From NCBI RefSeq assembly GCF_046119375.1, contig NW_027362767.1, forward strand, positions 421,166,001 through 421,230,000: DNA of 64,000 bases, in the 5' to 3' direction. The stretch comes from Phyllobates terribilis (Eukaryota). How positions within the stretch are numbered: position 1 is the stretch's first letter; each line of letters starts with the position of its first letter. The notes under the pieces are model-generated. The model was not told where the DNA came from, ran no database searches, and saw nothing but the letters and a program-made list of their open reading frames with translations. This document shows positions 16,166 to 50,322 of the stretch, in pieces. A program made the translations under genes and the position numbers.

Positions 16166-16497
16166 TTCTCTTTTTCAGGAAAACAGTTGAACAAGACTAT
16201 ATAACATGTTTTTGTTTTCTAAAATGTCTCCACCTCTGTCTGGCATTACAGCACAGCCTCATTCACTTCAGTGGCGCTGAGCTGCAGTACCAGACACAAC
16301 CCATGGACTGGTGTGGCGCTGTATCTGGAAGCAGACATGTTTATCTAGTCATGGAGAACTTTAAGAATTGATTTTTCTCTTGATTATAGGCGTGAAACCC
16401 AACATGTAAGTGACTCCACTGGGCAGCAGGGGGCACTGCTGGTAACCTCCTGCCGCAATGTGACAGCAGGTCTAACCTCCTTCCTCCAGCCTTGGAC

Positions 16498-17361
16498 ATG
16501 AAAACGTCTTTTGGTCATGATGGACGACATGCACTAGATTTGAAAAGACAGGAAGAACTTCAACCATCCAAGAAGCCAGAGCCAGAGATGATCTCCAAAC
16601 TGTCTTGTGTAGCACCAGAAAATATGATGGAGGATTTAATCATGGATGACCATATCCTGACCGAGGACAGTAAGGAGGATGAGACCCGTGAACCACAGAT
16701 GGACGTCACGTACTACGCTGATGCTGGGGACAATGGCAGTGAAGAGTCCTTGGGTAACGTAGAAGACCCTTCTGAGATTGTGGAGGACGACAATGGAGAG
16801 GTCCGTTATGTCTGCTCCATCTGTGGGAAGATGTTCAAGCACATCGGTCACCTGAACCGACATAAGAAGAACCACTCTGGCCAGACTGCTTACAAATGTG
16901 AGGAGTGTGCTAAAAGCTTCTGCGATCAGCAAACGCTGGTGGTCCACCAGCGAGCCCACACCAGGGAGAAGCCATACAAGTGCTCCGAATGCGAGAAGAC
17001 CTTCGTCAACCAGTCCCACCTTACCGCCCACATGAGGATCCACACGGGGGTGAAGCCATTCATGTGCCCCATATGTAATCGCACTTTCACCAACTCATCC
17101 AGCCTAAAGAGGCATCAACAGACTCACACGGGGGATCGGCCGCACAAGTGCATGGAGTGCTCCAAAGCGTTCGGCCGGAGGGCCCACCTGGTGCGACACC
17201 TGAGGATACACACGGGCGAGAAACCCTATAAATGTTACAAGTGCGACAAGACGTTCAATAGGAAATTCTCTCTGGAAATGCACTACAGAGTTCATACGAA
17301 AGTAAGACCCCAGGCGGACCCCGAATCTTCTGGGAGCACAGACGATTCCGATGATTGGTGA
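16498..17361 (+). CDS. ZNF-A: C2H2 zinc-finger protein, 287 aa, acidic N-terminus plus 6 tandem fingers, single coding exon
   Basis: Acceptor ttcctccag|C at 16489/16490, ATG 16498; six C-x2-C-x12-H-x3-H fingers with TGEKP-type linkers; TGA at 17359-17361; no KRAB or FAX box. Confidence 0.93.
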   Translation: MKTSFGHDGRHALDLKRQEELQPSKKPEPEMISKLSCVAPENMMEDLIMDDHILTEDSKEDETREPQMDVTYYADAGDNGSEESLGNVEDPSEIVEDDNGEVRYVCSICGKMFKHIGHLNRHKKNHSGQTAYKCEECAKSFCDQQTLVVHQRAHTREKPYKCSECEKTFVNQSHLTAHMRIHTGVKPFMCPICNRTFTNSSSLKRHQQTHTGDRPHKCMECSKAFGRRAHLVRHLRIHTGEKPYKCYKCDKTFNRKFSLEMHYRVHTKVRPQADPESSGSTDDSDDW

Positions 17362-26970: not shown

Positions 26971-27811
26971 CTCCGCTTGCAGTGCATTCTTGCAGATCTC
27001 CGCTTGCAGTGCATTCTTTCAGATCTCCGCTTGCAGTGCATTCTTACAGATCTCCGCTTGCAGTGCATTCTTTCAGATCTCCGCTTGCAGTGCATTCTTG
27101 CAGATCTCCGCATGCAGTGCATTCTTACAGATCTCCGCTTGCAGTGCATTCTGACAGATCTCCGCTTGCAGTGCATTCTGACAGATCTCCGCTTGCAGTG
27201 CATTCTTACAGATCTCCGCTTGCAGTGCTTTCTTACAGATCTCCGCTTGCTGTGCATTCTTGCAGATCTCCGCTTGCAGTGCATTCTGCCATCTCTGCTT
27301 GCAATGCATTCTGACAGATCTCCGCTTGCAGTGCATTCTTGCAGATCTCCGCTTGCAGTGCATTCTTGCAGATCTCCGCTTGCAGTGCATTCTTGCAGAT
27401 CTCCGCTTGCAGTGCATTCTGACAGATCTCCGCTTGCAGTGCATTCTGACAGATCTCCGCTTGCAGTGCATTCTTGCAGATCTCCGCTTGCAGTGCATTC
27501 TTGCAGATCTCCGCTTGCTGTGCATTCTTGCAGATCTCCGCTTGCAGTGCATTCTGCCATCTCCGCTTGCAGTGCATTCTTGCAGATCTCCGCTTGCAGT
27601 GCATTCTTGCAGATCTCCGCTTGCAGTGCATTCTGACAGATCTCCGCTTGCAGTGCATTCTTGCAGATCTCCGCTTGCAGTGCATTCTTGCAGATCTCCG
27701 CTTGCAGTGCATTCTTTCAGATCTCCGCTTGCAGTGCATTCTTTCAGATCTCCGCATGCAGTGCATTCTTGCAGATCTCCGCTTGCATTGCATTCTGGGA
27801 GATCTCCACTT
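26971..27811. repeat. 27-bp minisatellite (~31 copies)
   Basis: Unit CTCCGCTTGCAGTGCATTCTTGCAGAT with 26-bp variants. Confidence 0.96.
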
Positions 27812-27931
27812 GCTTTCAGTGAGTTTTAATTAACATCCATAACCAAGAATCAGATCCATCGAACCGATACTTTGTAGTGAACTGTCTGGCCGATCAGGAC
27901 AAGTCATTGTCTTGTTGCCATACACTGACAG

Positions 27932-30709: not shown

Positions 30710-31810
30710 GGCAGGGGCTCGGTGATGCCTACAGTAAATGATGGTGGAGCTCGATGCCTACAGTGAACGATGATGGGGGCTCAGCGATACCTACAGTGAA
30801 GCATGGTGGGGTGCTTGGTGACGCCTACAGTGAAAGATGGCAGGAGCTTAGTGATGCTTGCAGTGAACTGTGGCAGGGGCTCGGTGACTCTTACATTGAA
30901 ATGTGGCAGGGGCTCGGTGACTCTTACATTGAAATGTGGCAGGGGCTCGGTGATGCCTACGGTGAAAGATGGCGGGGGATCGGTGACGCCTACAGTGAAA
31001 GATGGCGGAGCTCGGTGACGCCTAAAGTGAAAGATGGCAGAGCTCGGTGATGCCTAAAGTGAAAGATGGCGGGGCTCAATGATACCTACAGTGAAAGATG
31101 GCGGGGTCTCGGTCATGCCTACAGTGAAAGATGGTGGGGCTCGGTGACACCTACAGTGAAAGATGGCAGGGGCTCGGTGACTCCTACAGTGAAAGATGGC
31201 AGGGGCTCGGTGACTCCTACAGTGAAAGATGGCAGGGGCTCGGTGACTCCTACAGTGAAAGATGGTGGAGGCTCTGTGACGCCTACAGTGAAAGATGGCA
31301 GGGACTCAGTGACGCCTACAGTGAAAGATGGCGGAGGCTCTGTGACGCCTACAGTGAAAGATGGCAGGGGCTCGGTGACGCCTACAGTGAAAGATGGCAG
31401 GGGCTCGGTGACGCCTACAGTGAAAGATGGCAGGGTCTCGGTGACTCCTACAGTGAAAGATGGCAGGGTCTCGGTGACTCCTACAGTGAAAGATGGCGGA
31501 AGCTCTGTGATGCCTACAGTGAAAGATGGCAGGGGCTCGGTGACGCCTACAGTGAAAGATGGCGGCGGCTCGGTGATGCCCACAGTGAAAGATGGCGGAG
31601 GCTCGGTGACTCCTACAGTGAAAGATGGCGGGGCTCGGTGACGCCTACAGTGAAAGATGGCGGGGCTCGGTGACACCTACAGTGAAAGATGGCGGAGGCT
31701 CGGTGACTCCTACAGTGAAAGATGGCGGAGGCTCGGTGACGCCTACAGTGAAAGATGGCAGCGGCTCGGTGACGCCTACAGTGAAAGATGGTGGAGGCTC
31801 TGTGACGCCT
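30710..31810. repeat. 33-bp minisatellite (~33 copies)
   Basis: Unit GGCTCGGTGACGCCTACAGTGAAAGATGGCAGG; 11-aa periodic ORFs. Confidence 0.96.
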
Positions 31811-32779: not shown

Positions 32780-35700
32780 AGAAATCCGCCCCATAGGAAC
32801 GACGCTAAGAAGATGCCCCAGGAACGACCCTAAGAAGATGCCCCAAAGGAACGACACTAAGAAGATGCCCCAGGAACTACCCTAAGAAGATGCCCCATAG
32901 GAACGACACTAAGAAGATGCCCCAAAGGAACGACACTAAGAAGATGCCCCAGGAACTACCCTAAGAAGATGCCCCATAGGAACGACACTAAGAAGATGCC
33001 CCAAAGGAACGACACTAAGAAGATGCCCCAGGAACTACCCTAAGAAGATGCCCCAAAGGAACGACACTAAGAAGATGCCCCAGGAACTACCCTAAGAAGA
33101 TGCCCCATAGGAACGACACTAAGAAGATGCCCCAGGAACGACCCTAAGAAGATGCCCCAAAGGAACGACACTAAGAAGATGCCCCAGGAACTACCCTAAG
33201 AAGATGCCCCATAGGAACGACACTAAGAAGATGCTCCATAGGAACGACACTAAGAAGATGCCCCAGGAACGACCTTAAGAAAATGCCCCATAGGAACGAC
33301 ACTGGCTGCGTGCACACAATGCGTTTTTCATGCGTTTCCCCTGCGGAATTTCCGAAGCGGAAACGCATCAAAAACGCTTGGTAATCCGCACCCCATGGTC
33401 CCCAAGGGGATTCCGCAATGTCAATGCCCATGCTGCGGATTTTTCCGCAGCGTTTCTGCAGCGCTCATAAATCCGCAGCATGTTCATTAATTTTGCGGAA
33501 GCGCAGCGGAATTGCCGCCATTGACTTGCATTGAGATGCATAGAATCCGTGTCTGTACATTTGTACAAGCGGATAATATGCGTCTCTATGTGCGGATGGT
33601 ACCCAGTTCTGGAGGAGAGAAGACTCTCATCCAGACCTGGGTACCATTGTACCTGTAAAAAAAAGAATAAAATAATAAATAAAGTTTATATTCACCTGTC
33701 CGGCGGCCCCTGCAGCGCTTCTCCTTCCAGGACCTGAGATGACGTCGCGGTCATGTGACCGCAGGCTGTCTCACGAGATGCCGGCAACCCGGAAGAAGCC
33801 AGGACGAGCGCGACAGCACACGCGGCAGGGGATGGGGGGTAAGTATAGCTTTATTTTTTTATTTTTACAGTCACACTATATAAATCCATGCCTTTTGCAT
33901 GGATTTATATAGTGTGACCTAGTTGTCAAGCACTTTCCAAGTGATGCTATCGCCTGTGGGTTAACGCATGTGGGTACGCATGTATTCTGCAGGAAAAACG
34001 CATGCACAATCTGCATGCGTTTTTTCTGCCAGGGAGATGCAGAAATGCTGCAGAAATTTTCTGCTTCATTTCTGCATCGTGGGCACAGAAGATGCCGCAT
34101 AGGAACGACACTAAGAAGATGCCGCATAGGAACGACACTAAGAAGATGCCCCAGGACCGACCCTAAGAAGATGCCCCATAGGAACGACACTAGGAAGATG
34201 CTCCAGGAATGACACTAAGGAGATGCTCCAGGAACGACACTAGGAAGATGCTCCAGGAACGACACTAAGGAGATGCTCCAGGAACGACACTAAGGAGATG
34301 CTCCAGGAACGACACTAAGGAGATGCTCCAGGGACGAGACTAAGGAGATGCTCCAGGGACGAGACTAAGGAGATGCTCCAGGGACGAGACTAAGGAGATG
34401 CTCCAGGAACGACACTAAGGAGATGCCCCAGGAACGACACTAAGGAGATGCTCCAGGAACGACACTAGGAAGATGCTCCAGGAACGACACTAAGGAGATG
34501 CTCCAGGAACGACACTAAGGAGATGCTCCAGGAACGACACTAAGGAGATGCTCCAGGAACGACACTAGGAAGATGCTCCAGGAACGACACTAAGGAGATG
34601 CTCCAGGAACGACACTAAGAAGATGCTCCAGGAACGAGACTAAGGAGATGTTCCTGGAGCGACACTAAGGAGATGCCCCAGGAACGACACTAGGAAGATG
34701 CTCCAGGAACGACACTAAGGAGATGCTCCAGGAACGAGACTAAGGAGATGCCCCAGGAACGACACTAGGAAGATGCTCCAGGAACGACACTAAGGAGATG
34801 CCCCAGGAACGACACTAAGAAGATGCTCCAGGAACGACACTAAGGAGATGTTCCAGGAACGACACTAAGGAGATGCCCCAGGAACGACACTAGGAAGATG
34901 CTCCAGGAATGACACTAAGGAGATGCTCCAGGAACGACACTAGGAAGATGCTCCAGGAACGACACTAAGGAGATGCTCCAGGAACGACACTAAGGAGATG
35001 CTCCAGGAACGACACTAAGGAGATGCTCCAGGGACAAGACTAAGGAGATGCTCCAGGGACGAGACTAAGGAGATGCTCCAGGGACGAGACTAAGGAGATG
35101 CTCCAGGGACGAGACTAAGGAGATGCTCCAGGGATGAGACTAAGGAGATGCTCCAGGAACGACACTAAGGAGATGCCCCAGGAACGACACTAGGAAGATG
35201 CTCCAGGAACGACACTAAGGAGATGCTCCAGGAACGACACTAAGGAGATGCTCCAGGAACGACACTAAGGAGATGCTCCAGGAACGACACTAGGAAGATG
35301 CTCCAGGAACGACACTAAGGAGATGCTCCAGGAACGACACTAAGGAGATGCTCCAGGAACGACACTAGGAAGATGCTCCAGGAACGACACTAAGGAGATG
35401 CTCCAGGAACGACACTAAGAAGATGCTCCAGGAACGAGACTAAGGAGATGTTCCAGGAACGACACTAAGGAGATGCTCCAGGAACGACACTAAGGAGATG
35501 CCCCAGGAACGACACTAGGAAGATGCTCCAGGAACGACACTAAGGAGATGCTCCAGGAACGACACTAAGGAGATGTTCCAGGAACGACACTAAGGAGATG
35601 TTCCAGGAACGACACTAAGGAGATGCTCCAGGAACGACACTAAGGAGATGCTCCAGGAACGACACTAAGGAGATTCTCCAGGAACGACACTAAGGAGATG

Positions 35701-35870
35701 TTCCAGGAACGACACTAAGGAGATGTTCCAGGAACGACACCAAGGAGATGCTCCAGGAACGACACTAAGGAGATGCTCCAGGAACGACACTAAGGAGATG
35801 CTCCAGGAACGACACTAAGGAGATGCTCCCGGAACGACACTAAGAAGATGCTCCAGGAACGACACTAAGA
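32780..35870. repeat. 25/27-bp minisatellite (~90 copies) split by a MITE
   Basis: Left units CTAAGAAGATGCCCC(AT)AGGAAC(G/T)AC(A/C); right units GACACTAAGGAGATGCTCCAGGAAC. Confidence 0.96.
33303..34089. mobile_element. Harbinger-like MITE (family of 28124-28968) inside the 25-bp array; right TIR clipped
   Basis: Starts GGCTGCGTGCACACAATGCG and ends GCATCGTGGGCACAG; shares CACTATATAAAT..GCATGGATTTATATAGTGTGACC..GTTGTCAAGCACTTTCCAAGTGATGCTA with the first copy. Confidence 0.88.
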
Positions 35871-36202
35871 CGTCGTGTGCTCATGTCCTTTAGTGCAAGT
35901 CCCTAAGTCTTCATAAAACAATATATAAAATAAAAAATGAGTTATATTTACCCCAAATAATGCTAAAACCTCTAATTTCTCATATCTGTGCTTAATAGAA
36001 AAATATAAAAACGTTTTTGATCTCAAAATACAGAAACACAAATATACACTATATTTTTTTATAGAACTTTTTCACTTGCTAAATCGTAAAAAGTACAAAA
36101 CGAATATATATTGCAGTAATTATACTGACACATATTAGGGGTATTATTTATACCGCAGGACATGGCATATGGACAAAACCACCATAACAAGAATGCTGTT
36201 AA

Positions 36203-37286
36203 CCCCTTCACTACCTTTTGATTTTAGGTTTTCATTTTTTTCTTCCCAGAGCCATAACTTTTTTATTTTTCCTTCAATATGGCTGTGTAAGGACTTGTTT
36301 TTCCGGGACGAGTTGTACCTTTGATTGACGCCATTGATTTTACCATATCGTGTACGGGAAAATGAGAATAAAATTCCAAGTGCGGTGAAATTGCAAAAAA
36401 AAGTGCAATTCCACAATTGTTTTTTGTTTTGTTTTTGTATAGGTTCTTTTTTATTTAATTGGTGAAAAAAAAAATCCAAAATTTGTGAGAAACAAATATT
36501 TCACTTTTGTCGCCATTTTCTGAGACCCGTAGCTATTCCGTTTCTCAAGATCTGGGGTCGGGTGAGGGATTATTTTTTGCGCCGAGCTGACGTTTTTATT
36601 GCTACCATTTTGGGGTAGATACAATGTTTTGATCGCCTGTTATTGCAGTGTTGCGGTGGCCAAAAGCATTCTAGAATTCTGACATTTTGATATTTTTCTC
36701 GTTATGCCGTTTACCGATTGGAATAATTTACTTTATTTTTTGATAGCTCGGGCGATTCTGAACAAGGCGATACCAAATGTATTTTTTATTTATTTTTTTT
36801 CAGTGAGGGGGGCAATTTTGAAGTTTTATGGTTTTTTTTCATATTTTTAAAAACTTTTTTTTCACACTTTGCACTGTCTTCAATAGTCTCCTCAGGGGAC
36901 CTGAAGCTGCGATCGTCCGATCACTTGTGCTACACATAGCAGGGCTTCAGCACTGCTATGTATAGCAGAAATCATCATTTCCTGTGAACGCCAGCCACGA
37001 GCCGCCATTCACAGGAGTATCGTGATAACAGGCACAGGGGTCTTCTGCAGAACCCCAGCTGTCATGACAATCCATAGGCGCCCCGTGATCACGTGACGGG
37101 TGCTAACGGGCGAGACTTGTGAGGCGTTTCCGGCTGGACACCTGGATTTAACACGTTAACAGGCCCTTGATGATTAAATCAGCCATCGAGTGCGGAGAAA
37201 GATGTATGTTCAGTGTCGGAGCCCACATCAAAGATAGGGATACGACCTTATACATATATAAATATACATCAAAGGTCATGAAGGGG
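36203..37286. mobile_element. Non-autonomous TTAA-target element (~1.08 kb)
   Basis: TTAA-CCCCTTCA ... TGAAGGGG-TTAA; related copies at 40125-40661 and ~51211-52260. Confidence 0.85.
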
Positions 37287-37598
37287 TTAAAGATAAAGAG
37301 TTATAAACTCACGTATACCCATAAAAGATGCTGTTAGGGTGATAATTTGTATTTTTGTGCTTCTGTCCAGCAGATCCTAATCATCCAGTCCAGTTGACGT
37401 TCTGCAAAGTTGGAGAAGAGCAAGGTTGTATAATTAAGAAGCCCATGGAAAAAGCAAGGAAAAGAGCTTCCATAGAAACTTCCCTAAAAACATCAACTGA
37501 ATTGAAGAAGTCGAAATCCATTGATTCGTTGTTGCCCGCATTCTCCACCATTTGTGGTGGGAAGTGTCCTGACGAGGACAACCTTTGTAAGACTGACC

Positions 37599-38789
37599 AT
37601 GGAAGCAGAAGTAATGGGAGAGTCTAGCGAAACTAAAAAAGAACTCACTTGGAGTGATGCAGACTGTGTTAGTAAGGAAAGCCCCGGTTGTATTGTCAGT
37701 GAAACCATAGAAGATCCGTCAACAGCATTCCATAAAGTTGACGATAATCCTGAAGAAACTCGGGCGGGTTTGTTTACTGAACAGATCCATACAACAGTGA
37801 AGACTGGACTTCAGAAAACTATAAAAGAAGAGAAAAGTGACCAGGAAGAAAACCCCGAAGAGACCAAAGTTACCAAAAAAAAGCAAAACCAGCAACCAAG
37901 GTCCTACACCTGTGCGTGTGGTAAAAGCTACTCCAGCAGCTCTCATCTCCACAGACACCAGAAGACTCACGTAGGGAATCAGGAGATGAATAGTGGTCGT
38001 GCTGTTGGAGAACGTGATGAAGTGAAGGTTACAAGTGAAAAATCTTTTCCATGCGTCTGTGGGAAGAGCTACACCACCATTTCTCATCTCCACCAACATC
38101 AGATGACATGCCAAGCTGGTTCGTTGGCCAACCTTGAGTCTGAGCATAAAGAAGGTCGATTGAAACCATATCTCTGCGCTTGTGGGAAACGTTACACGTG
38201 CAGCTCTCATCTCTACAGACATCAGAGATCTCACTTAGAAGGACCTAAGCAAAGTGTCAGTCCTTACATATGTGATTGTGGGAAGCCGTTCAGCAGGATG
38301 TCACATCTGAATCGGCACCAGAAGACCCATACCCTACAGAAGGTCCAGATAGAAGAACGTGGAGGTGACTCTGTGGAGGACACAGAGCTGGAGACTCAGG
38401 GGAGGATGAAGCCATACGTATGCACGTGTGGGAAAAGCTACACGTCCAGTTCTCATCTCTACCGACATCAAAGGACTCACCAAGATATCTCTGCAAGCTC
38501 AAGTTCTCGGGCTAGAGACAGTAATCTGGAGAAACCTTACAAATGTGAGTGCGGTAAAAGTTACACCTGCTCGTCCCACCTGTATAGACACCAGAGAACG
38601 CATAAGACGCAGGAGCTTCTTGTCAATGATCTCGACGGTAACAGTGATGTCCTCTTTGAGGAATCTGGAGATAAGCCTTACCAGTGCGAGTGTGGGAAAA
38701 GCTTCATACTGTGGTTTTCACTGATGGTACACAAAAGGGTTCATTGTAAAGTCCAGCGTCAGTCCTCCGCAGGGCAGGAATGTTCTTGA
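37599..38789 (+). CDS. ZNF-B: 396-aa protein with 7 dispersed non-canonical C-x1-C zinc fingers (six C2H2, one C2HC)
   Basis: Acceptor ttctgtccag|CAG at 37370/71; ATG in ACCATGG context at 37599; fingers YTCACGKSY, FPCVCGKSY, YLCACGKRY, YICDCGKPF, YVCTCGKSY, YKCECGKSY, YQCECGKSF; TGA 38787-89. The true N-terminus is uncertain (see findings). Confidence 0.9.
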   Translation: MEAEVMGESSETKKELTWSDADCVSKESPGCIVSETIEDPSTAFHKVDDNPEETRAGLFTEQIHTTVKTGLQKTIKEEKSDQEENPEETKVTKKKQNQQPRSYTCACGKSYSSSSHLHRHQKTHVGNQEMNSGRAVGERDEVKVTSEKSFPCVCGKSYTTISHLHQHQMTCQAGSLANLESEHKEGRLKPYLCACGKRYTCSSHLYRHQRSHLEGPKQSVSPYICDCGKPFSRMSHLNRHQKTHTLQKVQIEERGGDSVEDTELETQGRMKPYVCTCGKSYTSSSHLYRHQRTHQDISASSSSRARDSNLEKPYKCECGKSYTCSSHLYRHQRTHKTQELLVNDLDGNSDVLFEESGDKPYQCECGKSFILWFSLMVHKRVHCKVQRQSSAGQECS

Positions 38790-40124
38790 TTCCAGACTCT
38801 TCCATAACCAGGTCGTACAAACTTTTCTGTCCGGGAAAACATCAGTCCATTACTTTGATGACGTTTAAGGATCTGAAAGTTTTGAAGATGGGAAGATCTG
38901 GATGGCACAAATGCCCAGATATGGGGCAGTACTGTAAGGAACAAGATGGGGATGAGGATGATCGTAGCACTCACCTGTAGGGGTTGTATAAGGAAACAAC
39001 ACCTGTAGGGGTTGTATAAGGAAACAACACCTGTAGAAGCCTGATGTGCCCTAGCTGAAGCCCCATGGCTGGAGAAGAGTGTTGTTCAGATTGCAGTTTG
39101 GCAAAGTGGAGATATCCCGATGTGCGGGCTACACTCACAGAATTGGAAGAGATCCGGAGAGTATAAGCAAGGTTTTCTATTTAACCAATGCGTTTCGGTG
39201 CCTTTCTCAAGGGGAAATAACAAATATTTGGGTTTTTTATCTTGAGAAAGTCACCGAAAAGCGTTGGTGTGAATAGAAAGCCTTGCTTCTACTGTCCAGA
39301 TCTCGTCCTTTCCATGAGCGCAGCCCGCACATCGTGATGATCTCTGCTTTGCCAGAAACCTTTCAAGATGGCATATAAATGTCCCGGACGTAATAATGGG
39401 ACGATAACTGATCATGTTACGGTTTTATTATAATTCTATCATGAACGAGAGAGGATTCATTTTTTGTTCTCGTGTACAGGAAACCAGTTGTTATGTACCC
39501 TCATTCTGGACTAGAAAATAAGGGAGTCTTTTATTAGGGGGGAATCTGTGGAGGAGCCATAAGTAACATCTCTTGTTCTGGAGGACCCGGTATGTCTGGC
39601 AATACACTGATAGTCCACACATTTCAATGTAAACTGTGTAATTCTTCATTTCGGCTGTGGAGGCGCTGTGGGACAATTACGCCCCTGATCAGGCGATCGC
39701 TGGAGGTCCCAGCGGCTGGACACCATACAATGCCATAATATTGTGCTGTCCGTTGATGGGGGTTTTTTTTCCGCTAAATTCTTCCATCATCGCCACGTGA
39801 TTCATGAATTTTGCGCGAAATAAAAATTTTTTTTTTAAAAAAAAATTTGTGCAAAAAAATTCCAGGGTAGGCGGAGGGGAGACTGAGGGAAAAAATGAGC
39901 GACTTAAAAAGGTCATAATTGATAGTTCAGACAAAAACATTTGGGGAAAACAAAAACCTCGCCCGCATCGATGAACGTCCAAAATTCAGGAAAGCAAATA
40001 TAAAATAGACTTAAAAAAAAATTAAAAAGGCGAAAAATATCAAAAACTAGACAAAAGGTGCAAATGCAATAATGAATCGGGGCCCATAGTTTCAGTTTTT
40101 CACATTTTTAGTAGTTTTTTTTAA

Positions 40125-48900: not shown

Positions 48901-50322
48901 AAGTCACATCTCGGAAAAGCCTGACGTCTACAACGCCCGGCTGACTGCACTAGGTAAAATATCTGTATCTGGGTGGTATATAGATGGGAGTCGTCCGATT
49001 ACCTGCATCACCAGCGAGCCGCTGTTTACTTTGCCTACAATCACGAGGGAAATTAAAGGGATTGTCCACTACTTTAAATATGGAATCAGATTGGTTGGTG
49101 TCCAATATCTGGTGCCAAAATCGATCGGCTGGATGTAAATGGTGTATGGTGCCGTCTAACCACAGCTCTATGCACTTACTAGTGGTTGTTTTCGGGTCCT
49201 TCAGTCCAACTCCCATTCACTTCAATAGAAGTTGATCTCCAGTACCTGAGAACGGCCACTACACAGCTCCGTACCTTGCTCACATAGTCAGAGGCGGAGA
49301 TAACAGGTGATCAGTGGGAGTTTTGAGTGTCAGCCCCAACCGATCTGATATCTATGACCCATACTGAGGAAAGACCATCAATATCGAAGTAGTGGACCAT
49401 CCCTTTATGCATTACATGAAGTAACTTTACCATCTGTGTAATGCATGGGCACGCTGGGTCCTCCACAATGGATAATTAATGGGGTCCCTTCCACCTAAAA
49501 GACTCGTTTGTCATCAGTCTGAAATAATTTATTCAGATGGTGGCAGAGGATAAACGTTCTGACTTTTTCCTTTTCTTGCCTCCTTTCCCCCTTTTTCTCC
49601 CCTTCCCCCTTTTCTCCCCTCGCCTCCTATCAGATAATGACTTCATCAAAGATCCGACTGTGAAATCCGAAATAATCTACCAATTAACAGTCACCGATAA
49701 AAGATGCCGAAAATCGAGGTCAGGAGCAAAGACTTCTCCATGTGGGCTGTGCAGGAAAAGATTCTCCAGCAAGGCGTCTCTCAGCCGCCACCTGAAACTT
49801 CACTTGGGGGAGAAGGCATTTCCATGTCACACGTGCGGGAAGAGGTTTTCCTGCAAGAATCATGTGGACGCCCACCTACGGATCCACACCGGGGAGAGAC
49901 CATTCTCCTGCGCGGAGTGTGGACGGAGATTCACAAACCATTCCCATCTGGTGCTCCACAAGGTCGTCCACACCAAAGAGAAGCCGTACACGTGTCCAGT
50001 TTGCGGGAGAGGATTCACTAGGCAATCAAGTGTGGTCAAGCACGCTGGGATCCATGCGGAAAAGAAACCATTCGTGTGCAACGAGTGCGGCAAAAGTTAC
50101 TGCCAGTATGCTAACTTGGTGGTCCACAAACGATTGCATTCTGGGGAGAAGCCGTTCTCCTGCAAACATTGCGAGAAAGGGTTTATCTGTAAAGCCACCA
50201 TGCAGAGGCACGAGCTGTCACACACTGGAGAGAAGCCGTTCGCCTGTCCCCAGTGCGAGAAGTGTTTCGTTGACAACTCAACTCTCAACAAACACAAACG
50301 GAGAGTCCACATCAATTCCTAG
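45973..50322 (+). CDS. ZNF-C: 439-aa FAX-type/KRAB-A-like C2H2 zinc-finger protein (Xenopus oocyte zinc-finger-like), 7 coding exons, 7 fingers
   Basis: Exons 45973(ATG; acceptor 45930)-46035, 46613-46810, 47175-47283, 48141-48230, 48573-48662, 48873-48953, 49634-50322; sum 1320 nt, in frame, all GT-AG. Boxes ILNHTLEIICLLTTE, KKILELTNQMIRLLTCE, VPLKCQDVAVYFSKEEWEYLEGH; seven tandem C2H2 fingers; AATAAA ~50629. Confidence 0.92.

Follow-up and report, generated by a model that had tools for sequence, protein, structure and literature searches.

A frog family of zinc-finger proteins with one residue between the knuckle cysteines, and its frameshifted copy in the poison frog Phyllobates terribilis

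Introduction

Can a C2H2 zinc finger be built with a single residue between its two cysteines, and if so, is such a finger kept as a working module or merely left over from duplication? The question is raised by an open reading frame in a 64,000-nt stretch of the Phyllobates terribilis genome (positions 421,166,001 to 421,230,000 of contig NW_027362767.1, assembly GCF_046119375.1; hereafter the window). Fingers in classical arrays are separated by a seven-residue spacer (the TGEKP-type linker), and the PROSITE pattern PS00028 places two to four residues between the cysteines. An original prediction, made from the DNA letters alone, had read the frame as seven dispersed fingers, each with a C-x1-C (CxC) knuckle. 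From the retention of this knuckle in every duplicate, together with an intact reading frame and a promoter of its own, it had argued for a selected and possibly undescribed finger subtype; a profile search for relatives, dN/dS estimates, and structure prediction were among the checks it proposed.

Results and Discussion

Anatomy of the fingers

Translation of 37599..38789 (+ strand) yields 396 amino acids and a stop, beginning in a shifted frame (see below) at an ATG in the strong context ACCATGG. A regular-expression scan finds exactly seven fingers, with their first cysteines at residues 105, 152, 193, 225, 275, 316, and 363; six have the spacing C-x1-C-x12-H-x3-H, and the second ends in H-x3-C (C2HC). 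Along the + strand these are F1 (CACGKSYSSSSHLHRHQKTH, 37911..37970), F2 (CVCGKSYTTISHLHQHQMTC, 38052..38111, the C2HC finger, found by the pattern scan and by AlphaFold2), F3 (CACGKRYTCSSHLYRHQRSH, 38175..38234, the most conserved, with 88% mean between-species identity), F4 (CDCGKPFSRMSHLNRHQKTH, 38271..38330), F5 (CTCGKSYTSSSHLYRHQRTH, 38421..38480), F6 (CECGKSYTCSSHLYRHQRTH, 38544..38603; like F5 identified by the pattern scan and in between-species finger comparisons), and F7 (CECGKSFILWFSLMVHKRVH(C), 38685..38747, with a distinct hydrophobic helix, LWFSLMV, and 84% conserved between species). Helix positions -1/2/3/6 read SSHR, TSHQ, CSHR, RSHR, SSHR, CSHR, and LFSV from F1 to F7, and the core aromatic position is Tyr in five of the seven; the original prediction had both right, as it had the count of CxC fingers. 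From the last ligand of one finger to the first Cys of the next there are 27, 21, 12, 30, 21, and 27 residues, mildly acidic and rich in Ser and Thr (net charge -5 to +1 per spacer, -9 for the N-terminal region), with (K/E)KPY as the only linker remnants, so the long acidic/Ser-rich spacers without TGEKP that had been described are also real.

The protein matches Pfam zf-C2H2 (PF00096) at 77.4 bits against a gathering cut-off of 25.2, in seven stretches, the best-scoring of which begins at profile position 5, that is, past the first Cys. Aligned to ZFP568 and PRDM9 by HMMER, the knuckle shows a gap of one residue ('C.EC' vs. 'CKEC'), and none of the seven fingers matches the C-x(2,4)-C spacing of PS00028. 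The other features of PF00096-type fingers are kept: 12 residues between the second Cys and first His, the conserved aromatic and Leu, and H-x3-H (H-x3-C in F2). No KRAB, SCAN, BTB, SET, or other non-C2H2 Pfam domain was found in the window protein, nor any non-C2H2 Pfam domain in the Dendrobates tinctorius orthologue or in the Bombina and Discoglossus proteins introduced below.

AlphaFold2, run with an 18-sequence alignment, predicts seven separate beta-beta-alpha units (EE-----EE--HHHH in each finger), with ten-residue block-mean pLDDT of 79-90 within the fingers (82-86 in F1) and pLDDT below 50 in the first 98 residues and in the middle of every spacer. Each finger is thus predicted to fold alone as a beta-beta-alpha module between disordered spacers. 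In the PDB, Foldseek matches the model best to classical arrays bound to DNA (ZFP568, PRDM9, Aart, and CTCF), and an ESM Atlas feature search returned generic ZNF clusters only.

A family of relatives in frogs

A word-indexed search found 17 frog proteins with 41-77% identity to the window protein, from Dendrobates, Ranitomeya, Anomaloglossus, Engystomops, Leptodactylus, Hyla, Eleutherodactylus, Bufo, Hyperolius, Rana, Mantella, Pyxicephalus, Pseudophryne, Rhinophrynus, and Pelobates, along with two transcript contigs. They align finger by finger with the window protein, all of their fingers are CxC, and identity declines in parallel with frog phylogeny. Next in the ranking came ordinary poly-ZNFs, at abruptly lower scores. 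A profile of the family alignment, searched without length limit against 1.84 billion protein representatives, added only three more: a 2646-aa protein from Bombina bombina with 17 CxC fingers and one CxxC finger, a 2087-aa protein from Discoglossus pictus with 16 CxC fingers and four classical TGEKP-linked ones at the C-terminus, and a further Logan transcript contig (694 aa, nine CxC fingers). Since the Discoglossus gene model contains introns and extends over 12.7 kb, a fused neighboring gene could be the source of its classical C-terminal fingers.

Among the 1.84 billion representatives no CxC protein was found outside frogs, whether in salamanders, caecilians, or other vertebrates, and no family member in Xenopus; a second search, with the Rhinophrynus protein as query, likewise found no non-frog CxC protein. 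This absence is one from predicted proteomes, as distinct from genome-level searches. The proposed profile search therefore did find relatives, a family in frogs whose fingers are CxC throughout. By sequence comparison the family is present across frogs and not detected elsewhere, and would date back at least to the split between Bombina/Discoglossus and the neobatrachians.

Over the 21 frog proteins the CxC knuckle is found in 152 of 152 family fingers, as are the two Cys, the Gly that follows, and the first His, with Leu in 150; the consensus is Y-x-C-x-C-G-K-S-Y-T-(S/C)-S-S-H-L-Y-R-H-Q-(R/K)-T-H. That CxC might be common in classical ZNFs was considered and rejected: most apparent matches are 'CCxC', which is really CxxC, and true CxC occurs in about 5 of some 4,070 fingers in the classical ZNF matches (~0.1%). 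Seven of seven in one protein is thus well outside what chance would give.

The window gene might belong to a vertebrate ZNF gene that is already characterized, as NCBI automatic names for the relatives (ZNF436-like, ZNF883-like, ZNF263-like, PRDM9-like) would have it. These names conflict with one another, however, and reflect generic finger similarity only. With the Rhinophrynus query there is a steep drop in score between the frog family, at 160 bits or more, and classical ZNFs, at 127 bits or less; KRAB, SCAN, and SET domains are absent; and in the mammalian proteins of those names the fingers are CxxC and TGEKP-linked. No characterized orthologue was found in protein and literature searches, and membership in a known gene is highly improbable.

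Selection on fingers and spacers

dN/dS was estimated by the Nei-Gojobori method for the window gene and three orthologous Logan transcript contigs (L001, L002, and L003). Finger codons gave 0.09 (window vs. L001) and 0.07 (L002 vs. L003), and spacers 0.48 and 0.44 for the same pairs, at dS values of 1.0-1.7 that are near saturation (other pairs are saturated) and with uncertain spacer alignments. Fingers are under strong purifying selection and spacers evolve fast; neutral evolution, which this check might have revealed, is not what is seen.

Between species, a finger is closer to its orthologues than to other fingers (0.88 for F3, 0.82 for F6, and 0.84 for F7), and paralogous fingers are no closer within a species than across species (F3-F5, 0.78 vs. 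0.80). The helix (C/S)SSHLYR of F3, F5, and F6 is common to every species, and F7 has its own conserved hydrophobic helix. Because paralogues are equally alike within and across species, the shared helix appears to have been kept by selection on each finger. Gene conversion or concerted evolution was examined as a source of the repeated helix and rejected, the within-species paralogue identity being equal to the between-species value.

Selection on the knuckle itself is a separate matter. All the fingers trace back to a single CxC ancestor, the change from CxxC to CxC is seen in only ~0.1% of classical fingers, and going back would take an insertion of exactly 3 nt. Retention alone is therefore no evidence of selection for CxC over CxxC; what is selected is the finger as a whole. 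The argument from retention in every duplicate to a selected subtype holds up insofar as the gene is real and its fingers are constrained, but retention is mainly a matter of common descent.

At the other extreme, a CxC knuckle might be unable to bind zinc, with the fingers as degenerate relics and their pattern a by-product of recent duplication. CxC does fail the PROSITE-type C-x(2,4)-C pattern, and the sporadic CxC fingers of classical arrays could be degenerate. Against this, the ligands are invariant in 152 fingers from Bombina and Discoglossus through the neobatrachians, finger dN/dS is 0.07-0.09 with no concerted evolution, AlphaFold2 predicts the beta-beta-alpha fold confidently, and a CX1C finger is folded in a plant crystal structure (PMC5873383; PMC11610476). 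Degeneracy is hardly credible on this evidence. Ligand invariance and, by analogy, the folded plant finger argue instead for fingers that would bind Zn(II) tetrahedrally.

Transcription and the 3' region

RNA contigs define a single coding exon and the start of the 3' UTR at 37371..39104 (+ strand), with a splice acceptor AG at 37369-37370. Long contigs from RNA run X5 and from X14 cover 37370-39001 with 0 gaps, and a contig from X11 spans 37426-39001; X5 and X11 are same-species RNA, and X14 is a run from the sister species whose kind of library is not recorded. Contigs of all three resume at 39007 (to 39104 in X5 and X11) past a break in a 28-bp repeat. The transcript was assembled in both RNA runs examined and is indexed in two more; in D. 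tinctorius, gene calling gives the orthologue one coding exon of 1341 nt. Transcription and splicing of the gene are established; the original prediction had reckoned with an unexpressed gene as a reason to abandon it, and this is not the case, since spliced RNA contigs cover the exon.

The promoter had been placed next to the reading frame, and here the prediction fails. The X5 and X14 contigs carry 96 and 57 additional 5' letters that are not located on 36000-37370, so the coding exon begins at the acceptor at 37369-37370, where the RNA contigs enter it, and the promoter lies elsewhere. The stretch directly upstream, 36150-37056, is a very high-copy repeat.

Beyond the stop codon, in what is probably 3' UTR, lies a near-perfect palindromic hairpin of about 265 nt (39097..39353, + strand; dG -160 kcal/mol, z -17.5). 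Clustered A>G differences in the RNA contigs fall within it.

Ancestral start codon and frameshift

The ATG at 37599 is not the one from which the gene was originally translated. An ATG at 37445, 154 nt upstream and in a different frame, opens a translation that matches the orthologue N-termini; its Kozak context, AAGCCCATGGA, is identical in the orthologue mRNA L001, and in-frame stops lie upstream of it in three of three orthologue mRNAs. These stops and the common context mark ATG 37445 as the ancestral start codon. In the window it begins a separate 60-codon ORF (37445..37627, + strand) that encodes the conserved N-terminal segment MEKARKRAS...KKSK and ends at TAG 37625-37627. Its RKRAS...KKSK portion resembles a bipartite nuclear localization signal, and may well be one.

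The two frames are separated by a one-base insertion at 37618..37619 (+ strand), between ...SNG and ESS..., where orthologues read through as ...SNGESS...: the window has two bases where orthologues predict one. Assembly error was rejected as its cause, since two RNA runs, an independent DNA run, and the sister species all agree with the window, with no indel at 37618/37619; the same site in RNA, DNA, and sister species makes the shift real and fixed. The insertion has detached the conserved basic N-terminus from the fingers in the P. terribilis lineage. The reading frame called intact in the original prediction is indeed open, but the ancestral coding sequence has been cut N-terminally.

How the fingers would now be translated depends on the two start codons. 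The context of AUG 37445 is weak (C at -3) and that of AUG 37599 strong (A at -3, G at +4). With such contexts the 396-aa protein could still arise by leaky scanning, with translation from AUG 37599. In P. terribilis a seven-finger protein would be made only in this way, by scanning past AUG 37445 to AUG 37599.

The window copy could instead be a young unitary pseudogene, its long ORF surviving because too little time has elapsed. The insertion that splits the ancestral coding sequence is confirmed in RNA, DNA, and the sister species; simple reinitiation at AUG 37599 is ruled out by its overlap with the upstream 60-codon ORF; and at a sister-species divergence of ~0.4% a frame of 396 codons should still be open with or without selection. 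On the other side, the transcript is still made and spliced, the start codon contexts permit leaky scanning, and the N-terminal motif is missing as well from the gene models of Pseudophryne, Rhinophrynus, and Pelobates. The few variants spare finger amino acids as well: of six relative to the sister species and another individual, the four non-synonymous ones are all outside the fingers and the two synonymous ones both within them, which suggests that constraint continues, though with six variants this is not significant (P about 0.14). A gene already dead is unlikely on balance, and the P. terribilis copy may be on its way to loss.

Comparison with known finger systems

In most respects the frog fingers resemble those of classical Krüppel-type poly-ZNFs such as ZFP568, PRDM9, and ZNF263: they share the x12 spacing, H-x3-H, the aromatic and Leu core, GK past the second Cys, a SHLxRHQRTH-type helix, KPY remnants, and the predicted fold, and such proteins are the best matches in both sequence and fold. 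They differ in having one residue rather than two to four between the cysteines of every finger, in their disordered spacers of 12-30 residues, and in contact residues that are near-identical instead of diversified. Unlike KRAB-ZNFs, the frog proteins are without a KRAB, SCAN, or BTB domain.

Xenopus dsRBP-ZFa and JAZ/ZNF346, which bind dsRNA through C-x2-C-x12-H-x5-H fingers, also have about seven of them on long linkers. The likeness ends with finger number and linker length, since the frog fingers have H-x3-H, and neither PF12171 nor PF12874 matches them.

The CX1C knuckle itself has a plant counterpart, in group A1 of the C2H2 proteins, which we take to be the IDD factors from their four-finger layout. 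The fourth finger of this group is CX1C-X12-H-X3-C (PMC11610476, Table 1), in a layout of C2H2-C2H2-C2HC-C2HC, as in IDD factors (PMC6539433). In the crystal structure of ZF3-ZF4 of JKD the fold is that of a normal beta-beta-alpha finger, with a helix that binds SHORT-ROOT (SHR) and not DNA; the SHR-binding motif is R(K/R)DxxITHxAFCD (PMC5873383). All seven window fingers share CX1C-X12-H-X3 with this fourth BIRD/IDD finger (PF22992), but F2 alone has Cys as its last ligand, and the plant finger is a single C-terminal C2HC in a four-finger domain of otherwise CxxC/Cx4C fingers, and binds protein. The resemblance is weak by Pfam as well: against a cut-off of 26.3 bits, PF22992 scores F4 at 12.4 bits (E 0.15) in the window protein and 17.5 bits (E 0.0039) in the D. 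tinctorius orthologue. The JKD ZF4 chain is absent among the best 60 matches of a PDB sequence search, which are classical ZNF chains. By sequence the frog-plant resemblance looks convergent, with no apparent homology beyond that of a generic finger.

Full-text literature searches for CX1C C2H2 fingers returned plant papers only, with no description in animals. The suggestion of a possibly undescribed subtype thus stands for animals, in which an all-CX1C zinc-finger family is apparently undescribed, and falls for the finger type as such, plant IDD finger 4 being already CX1C.

What the fingers may bind

The reading preferred here, with a probability of about 0.6, is that the window gene is the poison-frog-lineage copy of a frog CxC family, its CxC knuckle inherited and its fingers acting singly, in a multivalent protein, as readers of one short ligand. 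A Krüppel-derived C2H2 finger would have lost one knuckle residue, from C-x2-C to C-x1-C, before fingers were amplified within the gene, so that every finger inherited CxC; the zinc ligands, the Gly after the second Cys, and the helix core would then have been held by strong purifying selection. Spacers of this length do not let the fingers wrap contiguously around DNA, so the fingers would most likely be several independent readers of the same ligand.

Under canonical recognition rules, His3 with Arg6 specifies a GG-containing step. F3, F5, and F6 have this pair, and could read such a step in DNA, binding through avidity at clustered sites; the hydrophobic helix of F7 probably serves some other purpose, perhaps contact with a protein. 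A point against a DNA ligand is the usually weak DNA binding of isolated fingers. Within the family-level model, multivalent reading of a short GG-containing DNA element by single fingers is the favored if tentative proposal, given slightly less than even odds. A connection to the neighboring G-rich minisatellites, on which the original prediction had wanted binding tried, found no support.

In the main rival reading, the same fingers would instead be protein- or RNA-binding modules, with the conserved helix meeting a repeated protein surface or an RNA; proteins with dispersed fingers often bind one or the other. Long disordered spacers bar canonical tandem wrapping of DNA, identical helices in F3, F5, and F6 would suit a repeated non-DNA ligand equally well, the helix of F7 (LWFSLMV) is hydrophobic, and the JKD ZF4 helix docks in a groove of SHR and is dispensable for DNA binding (PMC5873383). 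Yet the classical DNA-reading consensus is kept (SHLxRHQRTH, H-x3-H, KPY remnants), the nearest relatives are DNA-binding poly-ZNFs, no Pfam model of RNA-type fingers (zf-met, JAZ) matches, and the SHR-binding motif is absent from the helices. A protein or RNA ligand is on these grounds doubtful, if plausible.

A further reading makes the family an ancient frog finger class in which CX1C is obligatory, the near-identical fingers are separate readers of one ligand, and the knuckle alters docking; this is rather unlikely.

Implications

For annotation, detection by the C-x(2,4)-C pattern misses every finger of the family, and since the best Pfam match begins past the first Cys as well, the family is likely to be under-annotated or misnamed (PRDM9-like, ZNF436-like). 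That no member turned up in Xenopus may account for its having been overlooked. In the window copy, a conserved gene has plainly had its N-terminus severed by a recent, verified frameshift.

With 152 constrained fingers, the frog family indicates that an animal C2H2 finger can be conserved with one residue in its knuckle, a point of relevance to finger engineering and to how far the zinc-finger fold can be varied. Helices that are identical yet set far apart by their spacers may indicate an unusual multivalent recognition; if true, reading by single fingers in multivalent combination would be a binding mode distinct from the contiguous reading of tandem arrays.

Repeats flanking the CxC gene

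The seven-finger CxC gene (ORF 37599-38789, plus strand) lies among repeats of several kinds. Immediately 5′ of its coding exon is a very high-copy interspersed repeat (36150-37056), at whose peak the summed contig depth in the DNA run reaches ~1e5, vs. ~13 across the gene itself. Farther upstream are four minisatellite arrays, with units of 27 bp (31 copies, 26971-27813), 33 bp (32 copies, 30756-31810), 52/79 bp (32788-33303), and 25 bp (71 copies, 34101-35869), which together fill a large share of the upstream 10 kb.

Shortly past the stop codon is an exact 28-bp tandem duplication of 2.3 copies (38972-39036), and all of the transcript contigs break inside it, at 39001. By folding energy, the sequence at 39097-39353, probably within the 3′ UTR, forms a near-perfect palindromic hairpin of ~265 nt (dG −160 kcal/mol, z −17.5), resembling a MITE. 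A>G differences cluster at 39131-39314 in contigs from RNA libraries and are mostly absent from the DNA run, which makes the hairpin a candidate for ADAR hyper-editing, although the RNA and DNA are from different individuals.

Related and neighboring zinc-finger proteins

Giant versions of the CxC family are found in Bombina bombina (P0121, 2646 aa) and Discoglossus pictus (P0122, 2087 aa), both early-branching frogs. They are built of repeated two-finger CxC units, and many of their fingers terminate in H-x5-C. The Discoglossus model has four classical TGEKP-linked fingers at its C-terminus, either a relic of a classical ancestor or a gene-model fusion.

In the P. terribilis window, ORFs encoding classical CxxC, TGEKP-linked finger arrays lie on either side of the CxC gene and on the same strand, one with six fingers (16492-17361) and one with seven (49537-50322). 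The CxC gene therefore belongs to a small ZNF cluster.
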